A stretch of DNA of 64,000 nt from Phaeosaccion multiseriatum (Eukaryota > Protista > Ochrophyta, other classes). The notes beneath the pieces were generated by a model. That model worked only from the letters and a program-made list of their open reading frames with translations, made no database searches and was not told the DNA's origin. Each line of letters begins with the position of its first letter. Within the stretch, counting starts at the first letter, position 1. This document shows positions 601 through 27,930 of this stretch, piece after piece. The DNA is taken from assembly GCA_965112735.1 (NCBI GenBank), contig OZ218963.1, forward strand, positions 2,728,001 through 2,792,000, in the 5' to 3' direction. The position numbers and the translations under genes are program-made.

Positions 601-630
601 CCCCCCTCACTACACCCCCGCCTCTTCCGC
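601..630 (-). promoter_or_regulatory. Polypurine tract of A1
   Basis: Minus strand reads GCGGAAGAGGCGGGGGTGTAGTGAGGGGGG directly before TGTTAG of the 3' LTR. Confidence 0.8.
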
Positions 631-3249: not shown

Positions 3250-3262
3250 CTCCTCCTGCTCC

Positions 3263-3351
3263 TGTTAGAAGTCGTACTTTTGCTAGACTGATACCTGCCC
3301 TCTGAATTCAGACCGGGAGGTATCAGTCTAGCAAAAGTACGACTTCTAACA
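3263..3351. mobile_element. Solo 89-bp palindromic family C unit
   Basis: tgttagaagtcg...cgacttctaaca hairpin flanked by CTCC TSD (3259-3262 / 3352-3355); removing it rejoins two same-frame pol ORFs. Confidence 0.92.
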
Positions 3352-5224
3352 CTCCGCAGGGGTGTGAGCAGGGCTCATCGCGCTAAGCTCCACCCCCGGG
3401 CCACCATGGACGAACGGCACACACTCCGCCATGCGAGGCCAGAGGCGGAGGAGCGCCGCAGCGTCAGCAAACGCGTACTCCCGTTGAGCGGCGGACAGCG
3501 GCCGCTTCGTCCAATCTGTGGCCCGCTCCTCCTTGCTAAGGTGTTGCTCCAAAAACATGCTGACAAGGTCCTGGAGTCCGATGAACTGAGCATGTTCGGG
3601 GCACACGCGCTTAAAGAGGTCACTGGTGTCCACCAAGTTGACGATGTGCTGGACATGCTCCGCGAGCGCCGGCCATCGGCCCAGGGCGCGTTGGTCGTGA
3701 CTCCAGTGGTGAGCCAGCTTCACAATCGAGGGTTCGGCCCACAGGTCCCGCAACGCTTGCGCCAGTACCATCATCCCCCCCGCCTTCTGAAGCGCGTCTA
3801 GATCAATCAAGAGCCCATAGTCACGCGCCACATCCGGCAGCGGCCCAACCTGCACGGCCAATTGCAGCAGCGACGCGCGCCGTCGGTGACGCGCCCACTC
3901 CGAATCCATGGCGACCACTTTGGCTGTGCGCAACTGAGTCGACAGAGCCTGCACGTGCCTCGGCGTAGACACGTACGTGCACCTCACTGCGGAAATGTGG
4001 CTCACAAATGGGGGCATCTGACCCGGCTGCCAGGCCTCTATCACAGCCTTCTTCACACCCAGCTGAGGTGCTCGCGTAGGCTGCCATCCGCATTGCTGGA
4101 GACGCTGTGTCCAAGCACGCCGAGCAGTATCCCTGCGTGACTGCGTCGCCGACAAGTCCACCTCTGCAGTCTGCCAGGCTTGTAGGGCCTCCGCTCCGCT
4201 CTGCTGCTGGTGGTGGCACCGTTGCTGCTGTTGCCGGGCCGTCACGGCAGGCACAGGAATAGGAAGGCGTGTGTCGGCTTCGCCCTGCAGCTGTTGCGCC
4301 ACTGCGAGAAAGCGAAGCAGTGCTCCCTCCGTTGGCTCCTCCCAATGAAGGCTGCACTCGTCCCCTACCATCTCCACCAGGTTCAACTGCACCCCCATCG
4401 AAGCACACCAGGTGTGCAAGGGCGACGGCCACTCGCACGCAACCATGGCCAAGTCTACCCCCGCATGCGTCGCCCACTCCTGCACCGGAAGCGCGTTGCG
4501 AGAGAGGCAGTCAGGCACCACCACTTGCTTCCCGGGACGATGCACAAACTGCAAGTGGTGCGTAGAGAGCCGCTCGTACCATCTGAACAGCTTGGAATTG
4601 GTATCCTTGTGCCCAGCCAACCACAACAAGGGCTGATGGACCGTCACCACTGTGGTGGGGTAGTGGCAGATGTACATGGCCAGTTTACGCACACACCACA
4701 CCACTGCCAGCAGCTTCAGCTCAGTGCTGCTCAGTCGCGCCTCCGTCTCCGTGGTAGCCCGACTGATGAACGTCACCACACGCTCCTCCCCGGTCGCATC
4801 TTTCTGAGAGAGCACTCCTGCTAACCCTTCCGTCGAGGCGTCGGTGCTCAGGGTGAAAGTCGTCGCTGGCCCGTACTCCGGAAAGGCCAGTGCAGGGGAA
4901 GACAACATGTTGGCAACGAGTCCATCCCAAGCTGCATCGTGCGAGGCATTCCAGGCGGTGCTCACGTCGACGCCCTTACGCAGTAGCCCATTGAGGGGCC
5001 GCACTTTGCGCGCAAACTCCGGAATGAAACGGCGAAAGTAGCTGAGCATGTCAATGAAACGCCGCACCTGCTTAACTCGATTGACGCCACCATCCTTCGC
5101 AAGCAACCTCAACGGCTTGACCAGCTCTTGCACCACCGCATGCTTGGCCGGGTCTGTGCGCACCCCATTCTGATCCAGCAAATGCCCGCAGAACCGCACC
5201 TCCGGTGCACCCAATACAGCCTTA
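3352..5224 (-). pseudogene. A1 pol: RT thumb, RNase H and DEDDy 3'-5' exonuclease
   Basis: FCGH, YFRRFIPEFA, TDAS..GLAGVLSQ, PDCLSR; exonuclease motifs AMDSEW, HDQRAL, DWTKRPLS..QREYAFAD. Confidence 0.92.
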
Positions 5225-7877: not shown

Positions 7878-8249
7878 TGTTACGATATAAGGCATCCCAA
7901 TATGCCTTCAGTATAATCCGAACGTTTGGATAATACTGAAGGCATATTGGGATGCCTTATATCGTAACAAAAGGTGGGTTCGGTGAGCCCTACCTTCACA
8001 CCGGGGGGTTGGTGCTACCGAAACGTTCGACCCTAAATACTGTCCCTCATCCCCACCAGTTTTCCGTGCTTTTTCCCTAGGGTACGACCCTCTGGTAACC
8101 CCCCTCGGGAAATATCATTTTTTTCCTCTTCCTCAAGTAGGACTCGAACCCCTCTTTTGTTACGATATAAGGCATCCCAATATGCCTTCAGTATTATCCG
8201 AACGTTTGGATAATACTGAAGGCATATTGGGATGCCTTACATCGTAACA
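7878..8249. mobile_element. Family E mini-element (372 bp): two 92-bp palindromic terminal units around a 188-bp core
   Basis: Units tgttacgat...atcgtaaca at 7878-7969 and 8158-8249; interrupts D pol; only a 2-bp (CC) duplication is visible. Confidence 0.88.
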
Positions 8250-16285: not shown

Positions 16286-18008
16286 TGTTGAAAGTCAGTA
16301 TTATGTCAATGGCCCAGGCCCAGGCAAATACGGTGAGAAACGGTGCGTGGCCCGTTTCTCACTCACCTCCCAGCAGGTTGGTCGTTTAGGATGGCTCACG
16401 GATAAAGCTAATAGAGACAAGGCTGGCTGCCAGGCTGGCTTTGGGGTTGCTATTACCTTATCCATGCGGCTACTCCTATCCTAGGTGGAGAGCAACGTGA
16501 CTCTTTACAACCCCAAAGAATCCCGAAGGCAGCTGACCTTGGCCAAGAGGCTCAGGCAGCAGCTCGGTAGCTTTGAGTTTGCCGGGAGCGGTGCCTTACA
16601 GCGGGCACGGCTTTCGAGTGTGGCAGCTGCACGGATGTTGCTGTTACACGGAAAATGCTGCTGGAGCTTGGTGGGCAGTGGAGATGGAGAATTGCCGGGA
16701 GCGGTGCCTTACAGCGGGCACGGCTTTCGAGTGTGGCAGCAGCACGGATGTTGCTGTTACACGGAAATTGCTGCTGGAGCTTGGTGGGCCGTGGAGATAG
16801 AGAATTGCCGGGAGTGGTGCCTTAGACAGCGGGCATGGCTTTCGAGTGTGGCAGCTGCACGGATGTTGCTGTTACACGGAAATTGCTGCTGGAGCTTGGT
16901 GGGCCGTGGAGACAGAGAACTGCCGGGAGTGGTGCCTTAGACAGCGGGCATGGCTTTCGAGTGTGGCAGCAGCACGGATGTTGCTGTTGCACGGAAATTG
17001 CTGCTGGAGCTTGGTGGGCCGTGGAGATAGAGAATTGCCGAGAGCGGTGCCCTACAGCGGGCACGGCTTTCGAGTGTGGCAGCAGCGCGGCTGTTGCTGT
17101 TGCACGGAGTTTGGCGGGAGACAGAGAAGGATACTCGCAAGGCTGCTTTAGGGACTGTCTGGGTGCCTTGTAGGCACACCAGTAAACACTTGAGCAGTCA
17201 GCATTAGTGGTGCGCAACGAGGCTTTGGCAACGCTGGTGGCGAGTAGGAGTGGAGATAGAGAATTGCGCGGGTGAGTTTGAGTCATGGGATGTTCTCATC
17301 CGTGAGCTTGTGTGGGTGAGTTTGAGTCGTGGGGTTTTCTCACCAATACAGGAGGGTGTGTGTTGGAGGAGCGGTCGCACACACCTGGGTGAGTTTTGCA
17401 TATTTCTCATCCGTTTTTATTGGAAGCAACATGGAGGCTTTTGCTACAAGTCGAGCTTTAGTAGGCGAACCCGCTTTGAGTTGCGTGGGGACACGCAATA
17501 GTTTAGTTCAGGGGGATGTTAGAAGTGCAGGGATGGCTGACGGGGATGTTGAAAATCAGTATTATGTCAATGGCCCAGGCCCAGGCAAATACGGTGAGAA
17601 ACGGTGCGTGGCCCGTTTCTCACTCACCTCCCAGCAGGTTGGTCGTTTAGGATGGCTCACGGATAAAGCTAATAGAGACAAGGCTGGCTGCCAGGCTGGC
17701 TTTGGGGTTGCTATTACCTTATCCATGCGGCTACTCCTATCCTAGGTGGAGAGCAACGTGACTCTTTACAGTTTCCCACAAAACTGTAAAGAGTCACGTT
17801 GCTCTCCACCTAGGATAGGAGTAGCCGCATGGATAAGGTAATAGCAACCCCAAAGCCAGCCTGGCAGCCAGCCTTGTCTCTATTAGCTTTATCCGTGAGC
17901 CATCCTAAACGACCAACCTGCTGGGAGGTGAGTGAGAAACGGGCCACGCACCGTTTCTCACCGTATTTGCCTGGGCCTGGGCCATTGACATAATACTGAC
18001 TTTCAACA
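16286..18008 (+). mobile_element. Non-autonomous LTR element B1 (LTR-internal-LTR-spacer-inverted LTR)
   Basis: 224-bp LTRs at 16286-16509 and 17547-17770, inverted copy at 17785-18008; CAAC TSD; no recognisable coding domain. Confidence 0.92.
16581..17125. repeat. ~114-bp minisatellite inside B1 (4 units plus a partial)
   Basis: Repeated gccgggag..ggctttcgagtgtggcagc..ggagaatt; B2 has 2 units plus a partial. Confidence 0.9.
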
Positions 18009-20501: not shown

Positions 20502-23500
20502 CTACTGGCGTTGCTGCCGTGCCTGCTGCTGTGCCGCTTGTAACCGCTTGGCCTCCTGCGTTGCCAACCATGCTGCTGTCTCCTCCTTCGAGTCAACTCG
20601 TGGTGTGTCAGCTCGTCTGGCCGGCACTCGCACTGTCCCCCCCCAGGAGGCCGCCAAGGGCACGCGACGCTCCCGCGGCACCTGTCGTTGCCCCAAGTCG
20701 CTCCCCCAAGCGAGACGAAGCCCTCGGCGATGCCAGGCGCAGGAGCCGTCAGCGCACAGCTCCCGTCGCAGCGGCAAAACTTGTCGTCGCACTTGCTCAT
20801 GGCGCTCCAACACTGCTTGCCGATGAACCTGGTCCCACAGCACAGGAGACTCCACAAGCATTGATGCCACTCTCCGACGTTGCCGCTGCAACCGCCCAGC
20901 ACCCACTCGACTCTGACGACACTGACTCCCCTTCTTGCCTTGGCGCTGCAAATGCTGAAACCGGGCCTTCACTGTCGGCTGAGGCACCAGAGTCGATGGC
21001 ACCCCCACCTCAGTCCGTGGGTGCGTCAGGGCCTGCACCGGCACAGCTTGCAGCGGAAGCGCCGTAGCCCCCAGCTCAGCCTCCTCTGGTACTACCGAGC
21101 AGCGAATTACAGGCCCCTGCGGTGGGTACCAGACCTGCTCAGCTCCTGCTTCAGCTTCAGACGGCTGCAGCGACACCTCCTCCTCCACCACAGACTCAAC
21201 CGCCTCCCGCGCCTTGGACCATGGCAGCCTGCGCGTCACCACACACCTCACCATCCCGCCAAGAGCACCAAGCCAGGAGGAGGGGGCCGCTGCAGTCTCC
21301 GGCACGGTATCTGAAGAAGCCGGCTCAGCGAGCATGAGCGCGGCCACCTCAGCACTCGCCTCCGAGTCGAGCAAGCAAGAAGCAGTGCCGATGACCTGCC
21401 CAGGAACGACCACAATGACCTGATTGTGGTGATTCTGCACTGTGATTCGGTAACTCTGCCCCCCAGCATACACACCATCTTTGTGCGCCACTAGAACCTG
21501 CTCGTGCTCCAGCCACCAGAGAACGTCCGCCTCCGCTGCCAAGTGTCCGTGAGCGCCCAGCTCCACCACCGCCTGGACACCCTCACCGATGCCCGTAAGC
21601 TCGAGGAGAAGGGACCCCGTCTGTCCAGGTCCCAAGCTCAAAGCCTCCACAGCACGTACCGCCCCAACAGCAGCGTTGCCGTCCACCACTGCCAGCACTT
21701 GCACAGCCAAGGCATCGGACGGACGAGCATCCGACGTGGCCTCCTCCGAAGGAGTCGGAAGTACGTAGAGCTGCTTCGCACGATGATCGACAACTGCCCC
21801 TACTTGGGTGAAGAAATCCTGCCCCAAGAAGATGGGCCGCGCCAAGTGGTCCACCACATGACAGGGTAGCACCGGCTGGCACGTCGGCGTGAGTCCCACC
21901 TGGAGCCAAACAAGCCCTCTGGACATAGTCTTGGCACGATTGTCAGCGTAAGACACCTGCACCCCCTTCTGCGTGGCGAGCTCTGACCGCTCCACCGTGC
22001 CATCCGAAACCAGTTGATTGAAGCAGGCTGTCGAGATGCAGCCCGCTCCTGTGCACCCACTGTCCATCAAGGCTGTAAAGGCGCTCTTCTCCACGGCGTC
22101 GGCTGCACTGGCATCCCGTGGAGCGGTAGCAGCCAAGCAATGCCGAGCGTCACTGACCTTCACTGGCGAGCGTACCGTAACCTCGATCGTGTGACCCCGC
22201 CCTACTGGGACTGCCGTACGACCCGTGGCAGCCACCGCTTCGGCAATCTCGGCTCGCCGCACTGCTGTCTGCAAGGCGGCCACCCCCCCCGGAGCGTCCT
22301 CCATCCGCACACGGTAGAGAGCCAAGGCAGCGCGTTGCACACACCCCTCGCACATATCACACTCACTGTCAACAGCCGACGCACAGGCACAAGCTCCCGA
22401 ACTGGGGGGCTCCTTGAGCAGAGCGACTCCCGCGCCAGGCTCCAAAGCTACTGCATGACAAGCACGCACAAACGGATCAAGGGCAAGCGTGTGCAGCCCC
22501 GCCTCCTCCGTCAACACAGCCGTGAAAGCAGCCTCCGGCTGATGCTGCTGTGCTGCTGATGTCGCACGAGCACGCTGCCTCCGCTGCTTCCTCGGTACCC
22601 GCCGTCGAAGAGCCACTGCGCGCCTCGCTGCATCCTGCTGCTCCTGTGCCGCCTGCTCGTCACCCTTGCGCAGCGCTGCCTTCGCCTGCTGGGCACGCCG
22701 TCTCAACCACTTTGCTGCCACCCTCTGCTCAGTCCTGCTCCGCCCCTCCGCCGGAGGCACCGCTGGAGACGTCAGCGGCAGGGTCCAAAGGCTCTGCTCC
22801 TGCTGCTGAAGCTGAACCTCCTCCTGCTGCTGAAGCTGAACCTGCCACGCCCACTGTTCATGTTCCCCCGTGGGAGTGAATGGCGGAAGAGATGCTGCCC
22901 CGAGAGGCAAGGCCCGCACGAGGCCCATGGCCTTGGCCTGTCGAGGCGTCACCAGGGAGCACAGCTGCTGAGGCTGAAGCTCATCGCTTGGCGGTGGGCT
23001 GGGCTTTGCAACCTGGACGGCAGCCTCGACAGCATGACCCTGCTGCTGCTCCAATTGCTCCGGCTGCCCCCCCGCCACCTGTGGCTGCTGCTCGGCAGCA
23101 GGACCCTGCTGTTGCTCCAGTTGCACCTGCGGTCCCGCCGGCTGCTGCTGCAGCTGCTGCTGCTGCTGTCCCAGCCGCTGTTGCCGCTCCTTCGCCGCGC
23201 TCTCGACCCAGCGCCGGGGATGCAGTGCACGCTGTTCCGGGAGCGCACACGCACGCACCCGCTCCAAACCCCTTGCATCCATCCAGACAGACTCGTGTTG
23301 CGCAACGGGTGCCGCCGCGCACTCAACCTCCCCAACTGCCGACTGCGGCGCCTGCTGCGCCGGGCACTCACCCGCAACGACTGCATCCTCCTGGCGCAGA
23401 GGCAGCGGCAGCGCGACATCAGGTCCGCTCGACAGCTCGACCGCAGAGCCGGGCTGCTGTGCTTCGACTAAGCACACGGAGCGTACCACTGGACACGGCT

Positions 23501-24150: not shown

Positions 24151-24570
24151 TCATTATCTTCTACACTGCTCTTGCCTGCCCTCCCCCCCTGTTCCCCCAC
24201 GCCGACGCTATCCTCACGCGCTGCGGTCGTGGTCCCCAGGGCTGCTGGCCAAGCAGCCCCGGGGCACCGTCAGCCTTCGAACTTGAACCCGTCCTGCGCC
24301 GCCAGAGTGCCCGCCACCATTGCTGCCACGGATTCAGACATGTCGGACTCCTGGTGCAGCGCTCTGACCGCCTGCCGCCGCTGCACGCGACTCACAATGC
24401 CGAGCAGCTCCTCACGCGTAGCCGGGATGGCGTTGCATTCTATCCAGCCATGGCCGGCGCGGCGACAAGTCATGCAGTTAAATGGGGCATTGCCGTTGCC
24501 ACGCTGCTTGACCGAGCCGTGGAACAGCAAGGGCCGCTGCTGGGTGGGCGTGAGCCGCGGCTGCTGCGCC

Positions 24571-24608
<38 letters not shown>

Positions 24609-25478
24609 TGCATTCACCCCCACCTCCTGTGACGGCTGATGGTCCAGATGCTGCTCCACCGAATTCACGGCCACTTCCAGATGCTGCTCCACCGCATTCA
24701 CTGCCACTCCCCCGCGCGGAGTGCGCAGACCACCACCACCACCACCACGGGCCCGCGGAGCCCCACCAGTAGAAGCGAGAGCGAGTGGGCTACCAGCCTG
24801 GAGCACACGAGTCGCCGCAGGAAATGCCTTCTTGTAGGAGGCGTAGAAGTCACTCCACGAGGGAGTCTCCGACTCCCAGCGCAGCCAGAAGTTGGTCATG
24901 CCGTCAGTTAATGGCAACGAGCCGTGACGAAGCCGAATCTCGACCTCTGGCCGCAGCACCGCCAGCAGGCCCGTAACCAAGGCTTGCTCATCCGTGGCCT
25001 GCCCCGTCACCTGCGCCAGACACAGAGAGAGTTCCGCCAGCTTGGTGAGCAGCCTGGCGAGCGCCTGGTTCACCTCGGCAGGAACGGTGGACGCTTCCAG
25101 AGGCTTAGCCTCCCGCACCAACGTCTGGACAAGCTGCTGGAGGCCGTCTCGCGCAACAGGAACGCCGAAGAGACGCAACAGACACCTCGCGAGCAATTGG
25201 AACTGTGCACTCTCCGTCTCCCACTCCAATGTGACGTGCTGGTCGCCCTCCATCCACGACGCACCCTTCTGAGCCTCCGCCAGGACAGTGGCCTGATCCA
25301 CTGCACCCAAGTCGGCCAGCACTCGCTGCTCCATCACCCGCCCTTGGCCCGGAAGCACGGACCCAGTAGAAGTCAAGATCTCCTGTCCTTGCAGAATACT
25401 CACCCAGTCGTACATGATTGCGAGCACCACAGCACGAGGATGAGGCTGTCCAGCCGCATCGAATAGAGAGGGAAGTTT

Positions 25479-26619
25479 TGTTAGAAGTCGTGCTTTTGCT
25501 AGACTGGTACCTACCCTCTGAATTCAGACCGGGAGGTACCAGTCTAGCAAAAGCACGACTGCTAACAAGCCCATTGCTAGAAGTCGAGCCCCCCCCCCCC
25601 CCACCGCACATAGTGGAGAGAAGTAATGTTAGAAGTCGTGCTTTTGCTAGACTGGTACCTACCCTCTGAATTCAGACCGGGAGGTACCAGTCTAGCAAAA
25701 GCACGACTTCTAACAAAGCCCTAATGCTAGAAGTCGAACCCCCCCCCCCCCACCGCACATAGTGGAGAGAAGTAACTCGCAGTCTGAGAATCAGACTAAT
25801 GGGTGCCAGCCGGTACCAGTTTTCGCCGAAAAACACACTTTTTTCACAAGCTACAGCCAGGATTCGAACTCGCAATGGCCTTGTTAGAAGTCGTGCTTTT
25901 GCTAGACTGGTACCTACCCTCTGAATTCAGACCGGGAGGTACCAGTCTAGCAAAAGCACGACTTCTAACAAGGCCATTGCGAGTTCGAATCCTGGCTGTA
26001 GCTTGTGAAAAAAGTGTGTTTTTCGGCGAAAACTGGTACCGGCTGGCACCCATTAGTCTGATTCCCAGACTGCGAGTTACTTCTCTCCACTATGTGCGGT
26101 GGGGGGGGGGGGGTTCGACTTCTAGCATTAGGGCTTGTTAGAAGTCGTGCTTTTGCTAGACTGGTACCTCCCGGTCTGAATTCAGAGGGTAGGTACCAGT
26201 CTAGCAAAAGCACGACTTCTAACAGTAACTCGCAGTCTGGGAATCAGACTAATGGGTGCAAGCCGGTACCAGTTTTCGCCGAAAAACACGCTTTTTTCAC
26301 GCCGCGCGTCTGAATTCAGACCGGGAGGTACCAGTCTAGCAAAAGCACGACTTCTAACAAGGCCATTGCGAGTTCGAACCCTGGCTGTAGCTTGTGAAAA
26401 AAGCGTGTTTTTCGGCGAAAACTGGTACCGGCTTGCACCCATTAGTCTGATTCCCAGACTGCGAGTTACTTCTCTCCACTATGTGCGGTGGGGGGGGGGG
26501 GGGTCGACTTCTAGCAATGGGCTTGTTAGAAGTCGTGCTTTTGCTAGACTGGTACCTACCCTCTGAATATTTTTATTCAGAGGGTAGGTACCAGTCTAGC
26601 AAAAGCACGACTTCTAACA
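25479..26619. mobile_element. Outer family C fold-back element
   Basis: GTTT TSD; palindromic units at 25479-25567, 26309-26359 (half) and 26524-26619, with inverted cores. Confidence 0.9.
25627..26224. mobile_element. Inner, intact family C fold-back element (598 bp)
   Basis: GTAA TSD; units at 25627-25715, 25882-25970 and 26136-26224 separated by two mutually inverted ~165-bp cores. Confidence 0.92.
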
Positions 26620-27746
26620 GTTTCCGCTCCTGGAGCACACGGATAGCACCCACGGGCGGCGTGATCGTCTGCCCCGTATGACGGGCGGGCGCCTGCAGCA
26701 CATCCAGTGCCTGCTGCCGTGCCCGCGCCCGCTCCCGTTCCATGTCCCGCTGTAGCATATCCTTAACCTGCTGCTGCAGCACCTCTACCCCCCCCTGTGC
26801 GGCGTCCTTAACCTGCTGGAGCTGCGCCGCGAACAGCTCCCGCTGCAACGTCTCCACCTCCAACTGAGCAGCACCCTCAGTCGGCCGCTGCAGCTGCGGC
26901 GACCCCGCCATCTGTCGCTGCAGCTCCACCGTAAACTCCCGCTGCTGCTCCGCCCCCCGCGAGAGCCGCAGCACCTCCAGTTCCCGCTGCAGGGCCGCCG
27001 TCTCCGCCTTGCTCTCCCGCAGTTGGGCCGCCATGAGCTGCGCAGCTTGGTGCTGCGTCAGCATCTCAAGCCCCTCCTGGAGAACCCGCGTGTCCTCCTG
27101 CTCCGGTGTCTTCTCTCCCTCCGCTGGCTGATCCACCACCCGAGCCCCGCCAGACGCACCAACAAGAGGGAACAAGGGCGTTCCAACCAGATTCCACACC
27201 GTGCTCTCCTCCTGGCCCACCGACTCTGCAGCACCCGAGTGGAAAGAAACCTCCGACTCCGCCACCTGCAGCGGCCTCACCCCAGCAGCAGAAGGGGAAG
27301 CTGCAGCAGCCGTAATCGCAGACCCCTCAAAAAATCCTCCTGCGTCCTGGAACGAGCTCTCAGAAGGCTCACGGAACGAGCTCTCAGACGGCTCACGAGA
27401 CTCCGCCGAGGGCGACTCCAGTGACTCCTCCCTGCGCAACGCCTCCCGCACACGGTCCACAGCCCCAGGGCTGGCAGTGACCTCCGCAGGAGGAGCAGCA
27501 GCTTCCGATACCACAGCCCCCACGTCCGCAGCACCACGATCAGCTCCACCGCCCTCAGCGTCACTCGTAGCGCCCTCCGTCGATGCAAGGCGCAGGAAGT
27601 CCATCACCTCCTCAGCCATTGCCACCCTAGCAACCCTAAAGCTGTCAACGGCCTTAAGCTGGGCAGCTGGAAGCAAAGCTCAGGCCAACACAATAAATCA
27701 GCCTCAAAGCTGGATCTCAGACCTGTGTCTTTCGGGTCTTCCGGGT

Positions 27747-27930
27747 TGTCGAAACTACCGACAGCTAGCCTCAAAGCCAAGCTAGAGCAGAGCAGAAGCT
27801 GAAGCAAGCACCCGGAAGCCAGCCCACACGCAGGCTGCGCTTACAGGATTTACCGTCTCGTTGGCCCGTTTTCCGGCCGTTACACTACTGATTGGGTCCC
27901 CAAGGGACCCCAACTAGGCCACTTCTAACA
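27747..27930 (-). repeat. Family A 5' LTR, followed by a self-complementary PBS (27738-27746)
   Basis: Homologous to 406-600; PBS ACCCGGAAG is complementary to LTR 27810-27818. Confidence 0.9.

Follow-up and report, generated by a model that had tools for sequence, protein, structure and literature searches.

A young palindromic foldback element with hairpin termini in Phaeosaccion multiseriatum and its probable insertion by a Gypsy integrase

Results

Two nested palindromes within a Gypsy element

The window analysed here is a stretch of 64,000 nucleotides from the genome of Phaeosaccion multiseriatum (contig OZ218963.1). Its minus strand carries two Ty3/Gypsy families, each of which possesses reverse transcriptase, RNase H, DEDDy exonuclease and integrase domains detectable by Pfam. 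As Pfam gives no chromodomain in the Gypsy elements of the window, we do not retain the label "chromovirus" that an earlier note, made from the sequence alone, had attached to the integrase. Full copies of Gypsy family A are 12.3-12.4 kb long. On the minus strand, the 195-bp LTR of this family (406-600) reads TGTTAGAAGTGGCC...GTAGTTTCGACA; it is preceded by GAGGGGGA, with a purine tract at 601-606 (plus-strand positions). All four LTR pairs that we compared are 100% identical, and family A is therefore active now; six of six LTR pairs have a 4-bp target site duplication (TSD). A search for homologues of the family A integrase returned two distant matches. The 5' part of the element, read from the minus strand, holds ORFs of 995, 386 and 367 amino acids (20502-23489, 24270-25430 and 26573-27676) without a Pfam match. 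Its leader starts with ACCCGGAAG, which is complementary to CTTCCGGGT at LTR position 123 and would fit a self-priming (Tf1-like) design.

A copy of this 12.4-kb element, with its 5' LTR at 27747-27930 (minus strand), is interrupted about 1.35 kb inside by a small repeat that we refer to as family C. Positions 25479-26619 comprise a younger, 598-bp palindromic copy nested in an older, damaged copy of identical design. The inner copy (25627-26224), flanked by the TSD GTAA (25623-25626 and 26225-26228), consists of a unit (25627-25715), a reversed core (25716-25881), a central unit (25882-25970), a forward core (25971-26135) and a last unit (26136-26224), in the order unit+, core-, unit+, core+, unit-. 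Inverted-repeat detection in the window assigns it arms of 203 nt that are 99% complementary, and an arm of 33 nt occurs 13 times in the window where 0 occurrences are expected.

The outer copy begins behind GTTT (25475-25478) with a left terminal 89-bp hairpin unit (25479-25567, plus strand) that has one mismatch to the consensus. The tail part of a reversed core (25568-25626, minus strand) follows, into which the inner element breaks at GTAA; the rest of this core (26225-26300, minus strand; core positions 111 to 35) opens with the second GTAA copy. Next come the deletion scar GCCGCGCG and a truncated central unit (together 26301-26359, plus strand; unit positions 39-89), the truncated unit itself occupying 26309-26359. 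The forward core (26360-26523, plus strand) belongs to an older 'ATGGGCT' subfamily and is 97% identical to the young core, and the right terminal unit (26524-26619), 96 bp long and with ATTTTT at its tip, consists of the left half-unit in perfect palindrome; GTTT recurs at 26620-26623. Nine paralogous family A copies retain the uninterrupted site ...GGGAAGTTT/CTGCTCC with one GTTT (a slash marks a junction here and below), and the outer insertion together with its 4-bp duplication is consequently certain. The layout of the inner copy and its TSD, as given in the earlier note, are thus borne out by coordinates and flanks, and its claim of nesting in a second copy with the TSD GTTT by flanks and empty sites.

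The hairpin unit and the core

Family C is built from an 89-bp unit, TGTTAGAAGTCGTGCTTTTGCTAGACTGGTACC...GGTACCAGTCTAGCAAAAGCACGACTTCTAACA, and a 165-bp core. The unit starts with TG, finishes with CA and folds into a hairpin of -44.8 kcal/mol (z = -16), in agreement with its earlier description as an 89-bp hairpin with TG..CA ends. It has 34-bp arms and a short upper stem whose two sides bear different bulges, A on one and CC on the other; as these bulges are the sole asymmetry of the unit, they allow the orientation (+ or -) of each unit to be assigned. Because the unit is a palindrome, both ends of an element show one LTR-start-like terminus, TGTTAGAAGT...ACTTCTAACA. A solo unit of an older subfamily (3263-3351), lying within the pol gene of a family A copy, has the same two changes in both arms; the solo insertion with the TSD CTCC proposed earlier is confirmed by CTCC at 3259-3262 and 3352-3355.

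The core shows no more similarity to the LTR, the leader or the pre-LTR region of family A than shuffled sequences do. Families C and E (see below) share a motif resembling a B-box or tRNA T-loop (GAGTTCGAATCCT, GGGTTCGAGTCCT) about 10 nt inside the head-side unit, found in the window at 25971-26022 and 8100-8157 and followed by A6-7/T5-7 runs. In family C, the B-box-like GAGTTCGAATCCT lies 10 nt inside this unit and precedes a T5 run; the head region has no tRNA-like fold (z = -0.5). A tRNA-derived SINE would have internal Pol III A and B boxes, an A-rich or LINE-like tail and TSDs that vary in length; the TSD of family C has a constant length of 4 bp. ARAGORN detected no tRNA, Rfam gave no tRNA or ribozyme match, and a permissive Rfam search yielded generic hairpin (miRNA-like) matches only, with no hammerhead ribozyme among them.

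Family C across the genome

The genome-wide unit search advised in the earlier note was carried out by pattern search of the 67-Mb assembly, with architectures and TSDs recorded at the loci inspected. It returned 305 arm matches, equivalent to about 150 units, among them 49 perfect units, as well as 52 cores. We inspected some 35 loci, which cover essentially all listed cores and about three quarters of the units counted. Solo units, monomers (unit, core, unit; 342 bp), a few direct dimers and arrays of up to eight cores were encountered, while the majority of elements are head-to-head dimers of the form unit+, core-, centre, core+, unit-. A perfect 4-bp TSD flanks 18 of the 22 loci with intact outer ends, and three further 4-bp TSDs were seen, namely the nested GTAA and those of two adjacent insertions (CGTG and TTCT). 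The 18 TSDs yielded no target consensus, and CCGG is absent from them. The previously noted equality in TSD length with the neighbouring LTR elements holds for family A (six of six pairs) and for the small LTR element B1 (CAAC).

Older subfamilies, some of which already have the dimer design, share 89-94% identity with the young copies in their units and 87-91% in their cores. With 49 identical units, family C is young; it is a mobile, non-coding and non-autonomous foldback element. Metagenome scans with the arm and with the loop were both blank, and a comparison of ten paralogous family A copies revealed no interpretable excision footprint.

Several copies are of interest in their own right. 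At C13:3326301-3329389, a family C core is cut within its G13 run and continues (joint at about C13:3328031) into at least 1.35 kb of (TTAGGG)n, an arrangement that suggests the healing of a chromosome end by addition of telomere repeats to the G-run of the element. The monomer at C7:3934162-3934503 lies between 224 bp of 100% identical inverted flank from a 42-bp satellite, and its 4-bp flanks, GTCG and CGAC, are mutual reverse complements; the element is the midpoint of a local inverted duplication. At C14:1514470-1515435, a third family of hairpin units (TGTAGCCTTTCTGAAGGCAAT...ATTGCCTTCAGAAAGGCTACA), with the B-box-like motif GGGTTCGATTC close to its unit, is inserted into a family C unit. 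Around 1.79 Mb on C9, an ankyrin-repeat gene lies on a segment of about 6.6 kb that is present in tandem, and again inverted 1.3 Mb away (at 0.44 Mb); every copy of the segment contains a family C half-unit that is truncated and belongs to an old subfamily.

Orientation of the terminal units

Fourteen TSD-flanked elements have a canonical unit at each end; in 13 of them these units are inverted, with a plus unit on the left and a minus unit on the right. Whichever end one starts from, the bulges of the unit are always met in the same order on the way inward. With respect to the core, the tail-side unit keeps to a single orientation in 46 of 59 cases; the head-side unit, which in most cases forms the centre of a dimer, varies. 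Any "flip/flop" of the central unit is uninformative, since the rest of the dimer is a perfect palindrome and the two isomers are one element in opposite insertion orientations. Unequal end variants are inherited, as a unit with the tip ATTTTT is present at one end only in two insertions.

The sequences adjoining the units are complementary neither to the unit nor to a tRNA 3' end with CCA. No polypurine tract lies next to the unit: unlike families A, B and D, which read GGGGA/TGTT at the LTR, family C reads ...GCATTAGGGCT/TGTT, and its sole purine tract is the G13 run 22 nt away. The earlier finding that a tRNA primer binding site is absent is therefore corroborated by ARAGORN, by Rfam and by the unit-adjacent sequence, and the LTR- or TRIM-like logic implied in the earlier note fails on the inverted rather than direct orientation of the terminal units. 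Its statement that the element is neither a MITE nor a TRIM stands in the second part, given the inverted units and the absence of a primer binding site and an adjacent polypurine tract. It does not stand in the first: family C is small and non-coding, with terminal inverted repeats (TIRs), a fixed TSD and many near-identical copies, and is in structure a foldback/TIR element and not a TRIM.

Shared ends and joint insertions with family A

The terminus of the family C unit, TGTTAGAAGTCG, agrees with the start of the family A LTR, TGTTAGAAGTGG, at 11 of 12 bases and resembles the other LTR ends in the window less closely; the outermost 10-12 bases of the unit are a copy of the first LTR bases of family A. 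Two composite insertions join the two families. In C10:803789-816847, a family C direct dimer abuts the 5' LTR of a family A element exactly (...CTTCTAACA/TGTTAGAAGTGG...; CTAACA/TGTTAG), and TCCT occurs as the sole matching flank on the outer sides only, left of family C and right of the family A 3' LTR; this is the weaker of the two cases, the TCCT being situated in low-complexity sequence. In C16:2394203-2407008, TAGG links a family C fragment to the opposite end of a family A element; the composite lies between two copies of GTTC, and neither part has its own TSD. Two successive insertions cannot yield either composite; in each, an end of family C and an end of family A must have been used jointly in a single integration event. 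These composites are the strongest evidence that ties family C to the family A integrase.

A half-unit that ends at the loop centre is fused straight to the start of a family A 5' LTR at C5:4374756-4374785 (...CCTGCCCTCTGAA/TGTTAGAAGTGG). This fusion, along with other inserts at loop centres, suggests that hairpin tips are preferred integration targets.

Centres of dimers and tips of units

Two copies, C2:3747412 and C1:4333272, end exactly at the loop centre; some units switch subfamily at precisely this point, and units of 91 bp consist of two half-units side by side. Many dimer centres are formed by a half-unit and its mirror image around a copy-specific, AT-rich filler, in copies that are otherwise 99-100% identical. 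Collectively, the copies that stop at the loop centre, the two-subfamily units, the 91-bp units and the mirrored centres suggest that intermediates naturally terminate at the loop centre.

The dimers are almost always head-to-head, and there is little variation between their arms. Two of them share private variants in both arms and four have unlike arms; in one, 14 of 140 positions separate the arms at C10:2319364 and C10:2319633, and in three others 2-6 positions do. As the arms of some dimers stem from different subfamilies, not every dimer was templated by itself, and such mixed dimers show that recombination or template switching is frequent. Compensatory changes were found in four arm pairs.

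Neighbouring elements B1 and E

The window contains two further small elements. B1 (16286-18008) is an LTR element with 224-bp LTRs (TGTTGAAAGTC...CTCTTTACA) and an extra, inverted LTR 14 nt past its 3' LTR. CAAC flanks the whole, so that both integrated ends of B1 are LTR starts, as they are in family C. Family E is represented by a monomer (7878-8249); in contrast to family C, its two units are direct repeats and a TSD cannot be recognised. A direct family E array of five units and four cores (C12:3039990-3041390) is inserted exactly in the loop of a central family C unit; every unit tip in this array is different (A4T10, GCCCCG, none, a 41-nt re-copy, CC), and one unit has a compensatory change in both arms. 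A search for a Gypsy LTR mimicking the family E terminus (GGGGA/TGTTACG) gave matches at chance level, so that evidence of end mimicry exists for family C alone.

Discussion

The 11-of-12-nt match of the terminus, the shared 4-bp TSD and the two composites lend strong support to the view that family C is inserted by a retrotransposon integrase, in all likelihood that of family A. Linear double-stranded copies of family C would be inserted by this enzyme through a 4-bp staggered cut. The earlier suggestion of a non-autonomous parasite of a chromovirus integrase thus holds as regards a retrotransposon integrase and fails as regards the chromovirus label.

The composites also show that DNA of family C and cDNA of family A come together ahead of integration, and reverse transcription is for this reason the favoured route of copying. 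Copies of family C would arise outside the chromosome, where the family A cDNA is, most likely from reverse transcription of a transcript of the element. On a monomer of the form unit+ core+ unit-, the new strand would end in a unit, fold back, prime and copy itself, and the product, unit+ core- unit- core+ unit-, would have the terminal orientations that we observe. A template ending at the loop tip might acquire a few untemplated bases as filler, and a snap-back to an internal site could give rise to the asymmetric centres. Priming by the 3' hairpin of the template itself was considered and rejected, because it would flip the tail-side unit in each generation, contrary to the one orientation that this unit has at 46 of 59 cores. 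We infer copying by reverse transcription and fold-back from these data. The fold-back priming proposed in the earlier note is compatible with the palindromic centres and plausible; the instability of long palindrome centres after insertion covers much of the same evidence. As a whole, an explanation that combines a foldback element, the family A integrase and extrachromosomal fold-back copying appears to us fairly probable. Several points count against it. Family C has neither a primer binding site nor a polypurine tract beside the unit, and shows no resemblance to the leader or packaging region of family A. An integrase is unable to excise a chromosomal copy, which bears on the source of the linear copies, and transcription of a perfect 600-bp palindrome would give long double-stranded RNA. 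Copy-specific fillers, symmetric centres and asymmetric central deletions are also expected from the instability of long palindromes once inserted, and the dimers with arms from different subfamilies were not templated by themselves. A more elaborate version is conceivable, although we regard it as doubtful: a short transcript, possibly made by Pol III and ending at the hairpin tips, would enter Gypsy particles and undergo hairpin-primed copy-back into palindromic DNA, this DNA, with a mimic of the LTR start at both ends, would be inserted by the Gypsy integrase, and the unusual 3'-5' exonuclease of Pol may trim 3' tails to the hairpin base and thereby set the ends. Family C would then be a novel type of retro-parasite, the LTR-retrotransposon counterpart of a SINE.

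The most serious competitor is the idea that dimers are not made in transposition at all, but that one master, be it a monomer or a canonical dimer, is copied faithfully and the centres are altered after insertion as hairpin tips break, ends are joined and the arms of long palindromes convert one another, which would produce the fillers and deletions. The variation clusters in the middle of the 600-bp palindromes, whose end units remain canonical; there are asymmetric central deletions, and the fillers resemble end-joining products. The unit tips of the family E array differ though three of its four cores, all but the first, agree to at least 99.5%, and hairpin mismatch repair can give compensatory changes in the arms. 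Change after insertion therefore explains fillers, central deletions and compensatory arm changes equally well as copy-back does. Nevertheless, it is silent on how the master is copied, leaves the near-constant head-to-head arrangement of dimers unexplained, and has to share the asymmetric centres with an internal snap-back; we give it a substantial chance, if one below even. Palindromes are, of course, a known artefact of long-read libraries, and fold-back reads might have misled the assembly. About 30 internal loci on 13 contigs, however, share the same anatomy, each with its own 4-bp TSD, which makes an artefact very unlikely; empty paralogous sites, nesting and diverged subfamilies are all present as well, and we consider the probability of this explanation negligible.

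Two other readings place family C in established classes of mobile elements. It could be a MITE/foldback derivative of a DNA transposon that is mobilised as DNA, either through cut-and-paste or through copy-out, paste-in as in IS3, its partner being Ginger-like or from another DDE family with TGT...ACA ends and 4-bp TSDs, and being rare, divergent at its ends or situated in a part of the genome that we did not inspect. The true TIRs (inverted terminal units in 13 of 14 elements), the inheritance of unequal end variants such as the ATTTTT unit in two insertions and the absence of a primer binding site and polypurine tract all speak for such an origin, as do TGTNR ends and 4-bp TSDs, which are traits of Ginger elements (PMC2836005). 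The targets, on the other hand, are unlike the CCGG/CCGT of Ginger1 and the AT-rich RTATAY of Ginger2 (PMC2836005), no perfect arm runs on into non-hairpin sequence, and the two single-TSD composites bind the family C ends to Gypsy integration. Pattern searches found no partner, and one sharing only about 10 terminal bases would have escaped them; TGTTAGAAGTCG followed by a base other than T turned up decayed units and scattered single matches only. A pair of TGTTAGAAGTCGA sequences 6.6 kb apart on C9 was rejected as the LTRs of an autonomous partner, as they are truncated half-units in the tandemly duplicated ankyrin-gene segment. On balance, descent from a DNA transposon seems unlikely. If family C were a TRIM-like miniature LTR retrotransposon, its 89-bp unit would serve as a direct LTR of the form U3-R-U5, R would coincide with the loop centre, and strand transfer would renew the unit in each cycle. 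Such a reading would account for the TG...CA ends and 4-bp TSD, for TSDs on solo units and for direct arrays (C10:803789 and those of family E). The subfamily switch at the loop centre of some units, as in recombinant LTRs, and one copy with the structure half-unit, core, half-unit, like a genomic RNA, would also suit it. It is contradicted by the inverted terminal units in 13 of 14 elements. Moreover, an LTR-type cycle on an inverted dimer should lead to symmetric end units, which are not seen, the two ends of one element can differ, no primer binding site is present, and the sole purine tract is the G13 run 22 nt from the unit. We therefore hold this reading to be highly improbable.

Family C combines features of several known systems. 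Like TRIMs and other small non-autonomous LTR retrotransposons, retrozymes included, it is tiny and non-coding with TG...CA ends and a 4-bp TSD, and like TRIMs it relies on Gypsy enzymes and forms solo repeats and arrays that share a repeat. Unlike TRIMs and retrozymes, it has inverted hairpins as terminal repeats, lacks a primer binding site, an adjacent polypurine tract and a ribozyme, and is mostly a head-to-head palindrome. With foldback elements (FB of Drosophila, Tetris, Tm1) and MITEs it shares long inverted arms, a variable centre, the lack of coding sequence and a TSD of fixed length; those elements, however, use Mutator- or P-type transposases and have 8-9-bp TSDs, whereas the arms of family C begin with a self-complementary unit bearing the signature of a retro-integrase. 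Rolling-hairpin replicons such as parvoviruses resemble it in their terminal hairpins and in head-to-head dimers joined through a single copy of the palindrome, but the terminal units of family C do not flip, no Rep gene is known here, and its insertion makes TSDs. The bacterial IS3 family offers a replicative, RNA-free route through copy-out, paste-in. IS3 elements likewise have TG...CA ends and 3-4-bp TSDs, and their transposase is related to retroviral integrase; unlike in IS3, neither circle junctions with abutted ends nor a dedicated transposase were seen for family C. Ginger elements and their non-autonomous copies come close in their TIRs, TGTNR termini (here TGTTA), 4-bp TSDs and need for an integrase of the Gypsy-type fold (PMC2836005). 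Family C differs from them in that no autonomous partner was seen, in its targets, in its genuine Gypsy LTR terminus and in the use of family C and family A ends in one insertion.

To our knowledge, the parasites of LTR retrotransposons described so far (TRIMs, LARDs and retrozymes) all keep direct LTRs, a primer binding site and a polypurine tract. Family C keeps just some 11 terminal LTR bases, displayed at both ends through its palindromic unit, and yet integrates, even jointly with a Gypsy element. At issue is whether DNA with such ends is made by copy-back reverse transcription or by a DNA-level route, and the youth of family C renders its mode of copying directly testable in culture. The element shows how little sequence a Gypsy integrase needs and provides a natural minimal substrate for integration assays.
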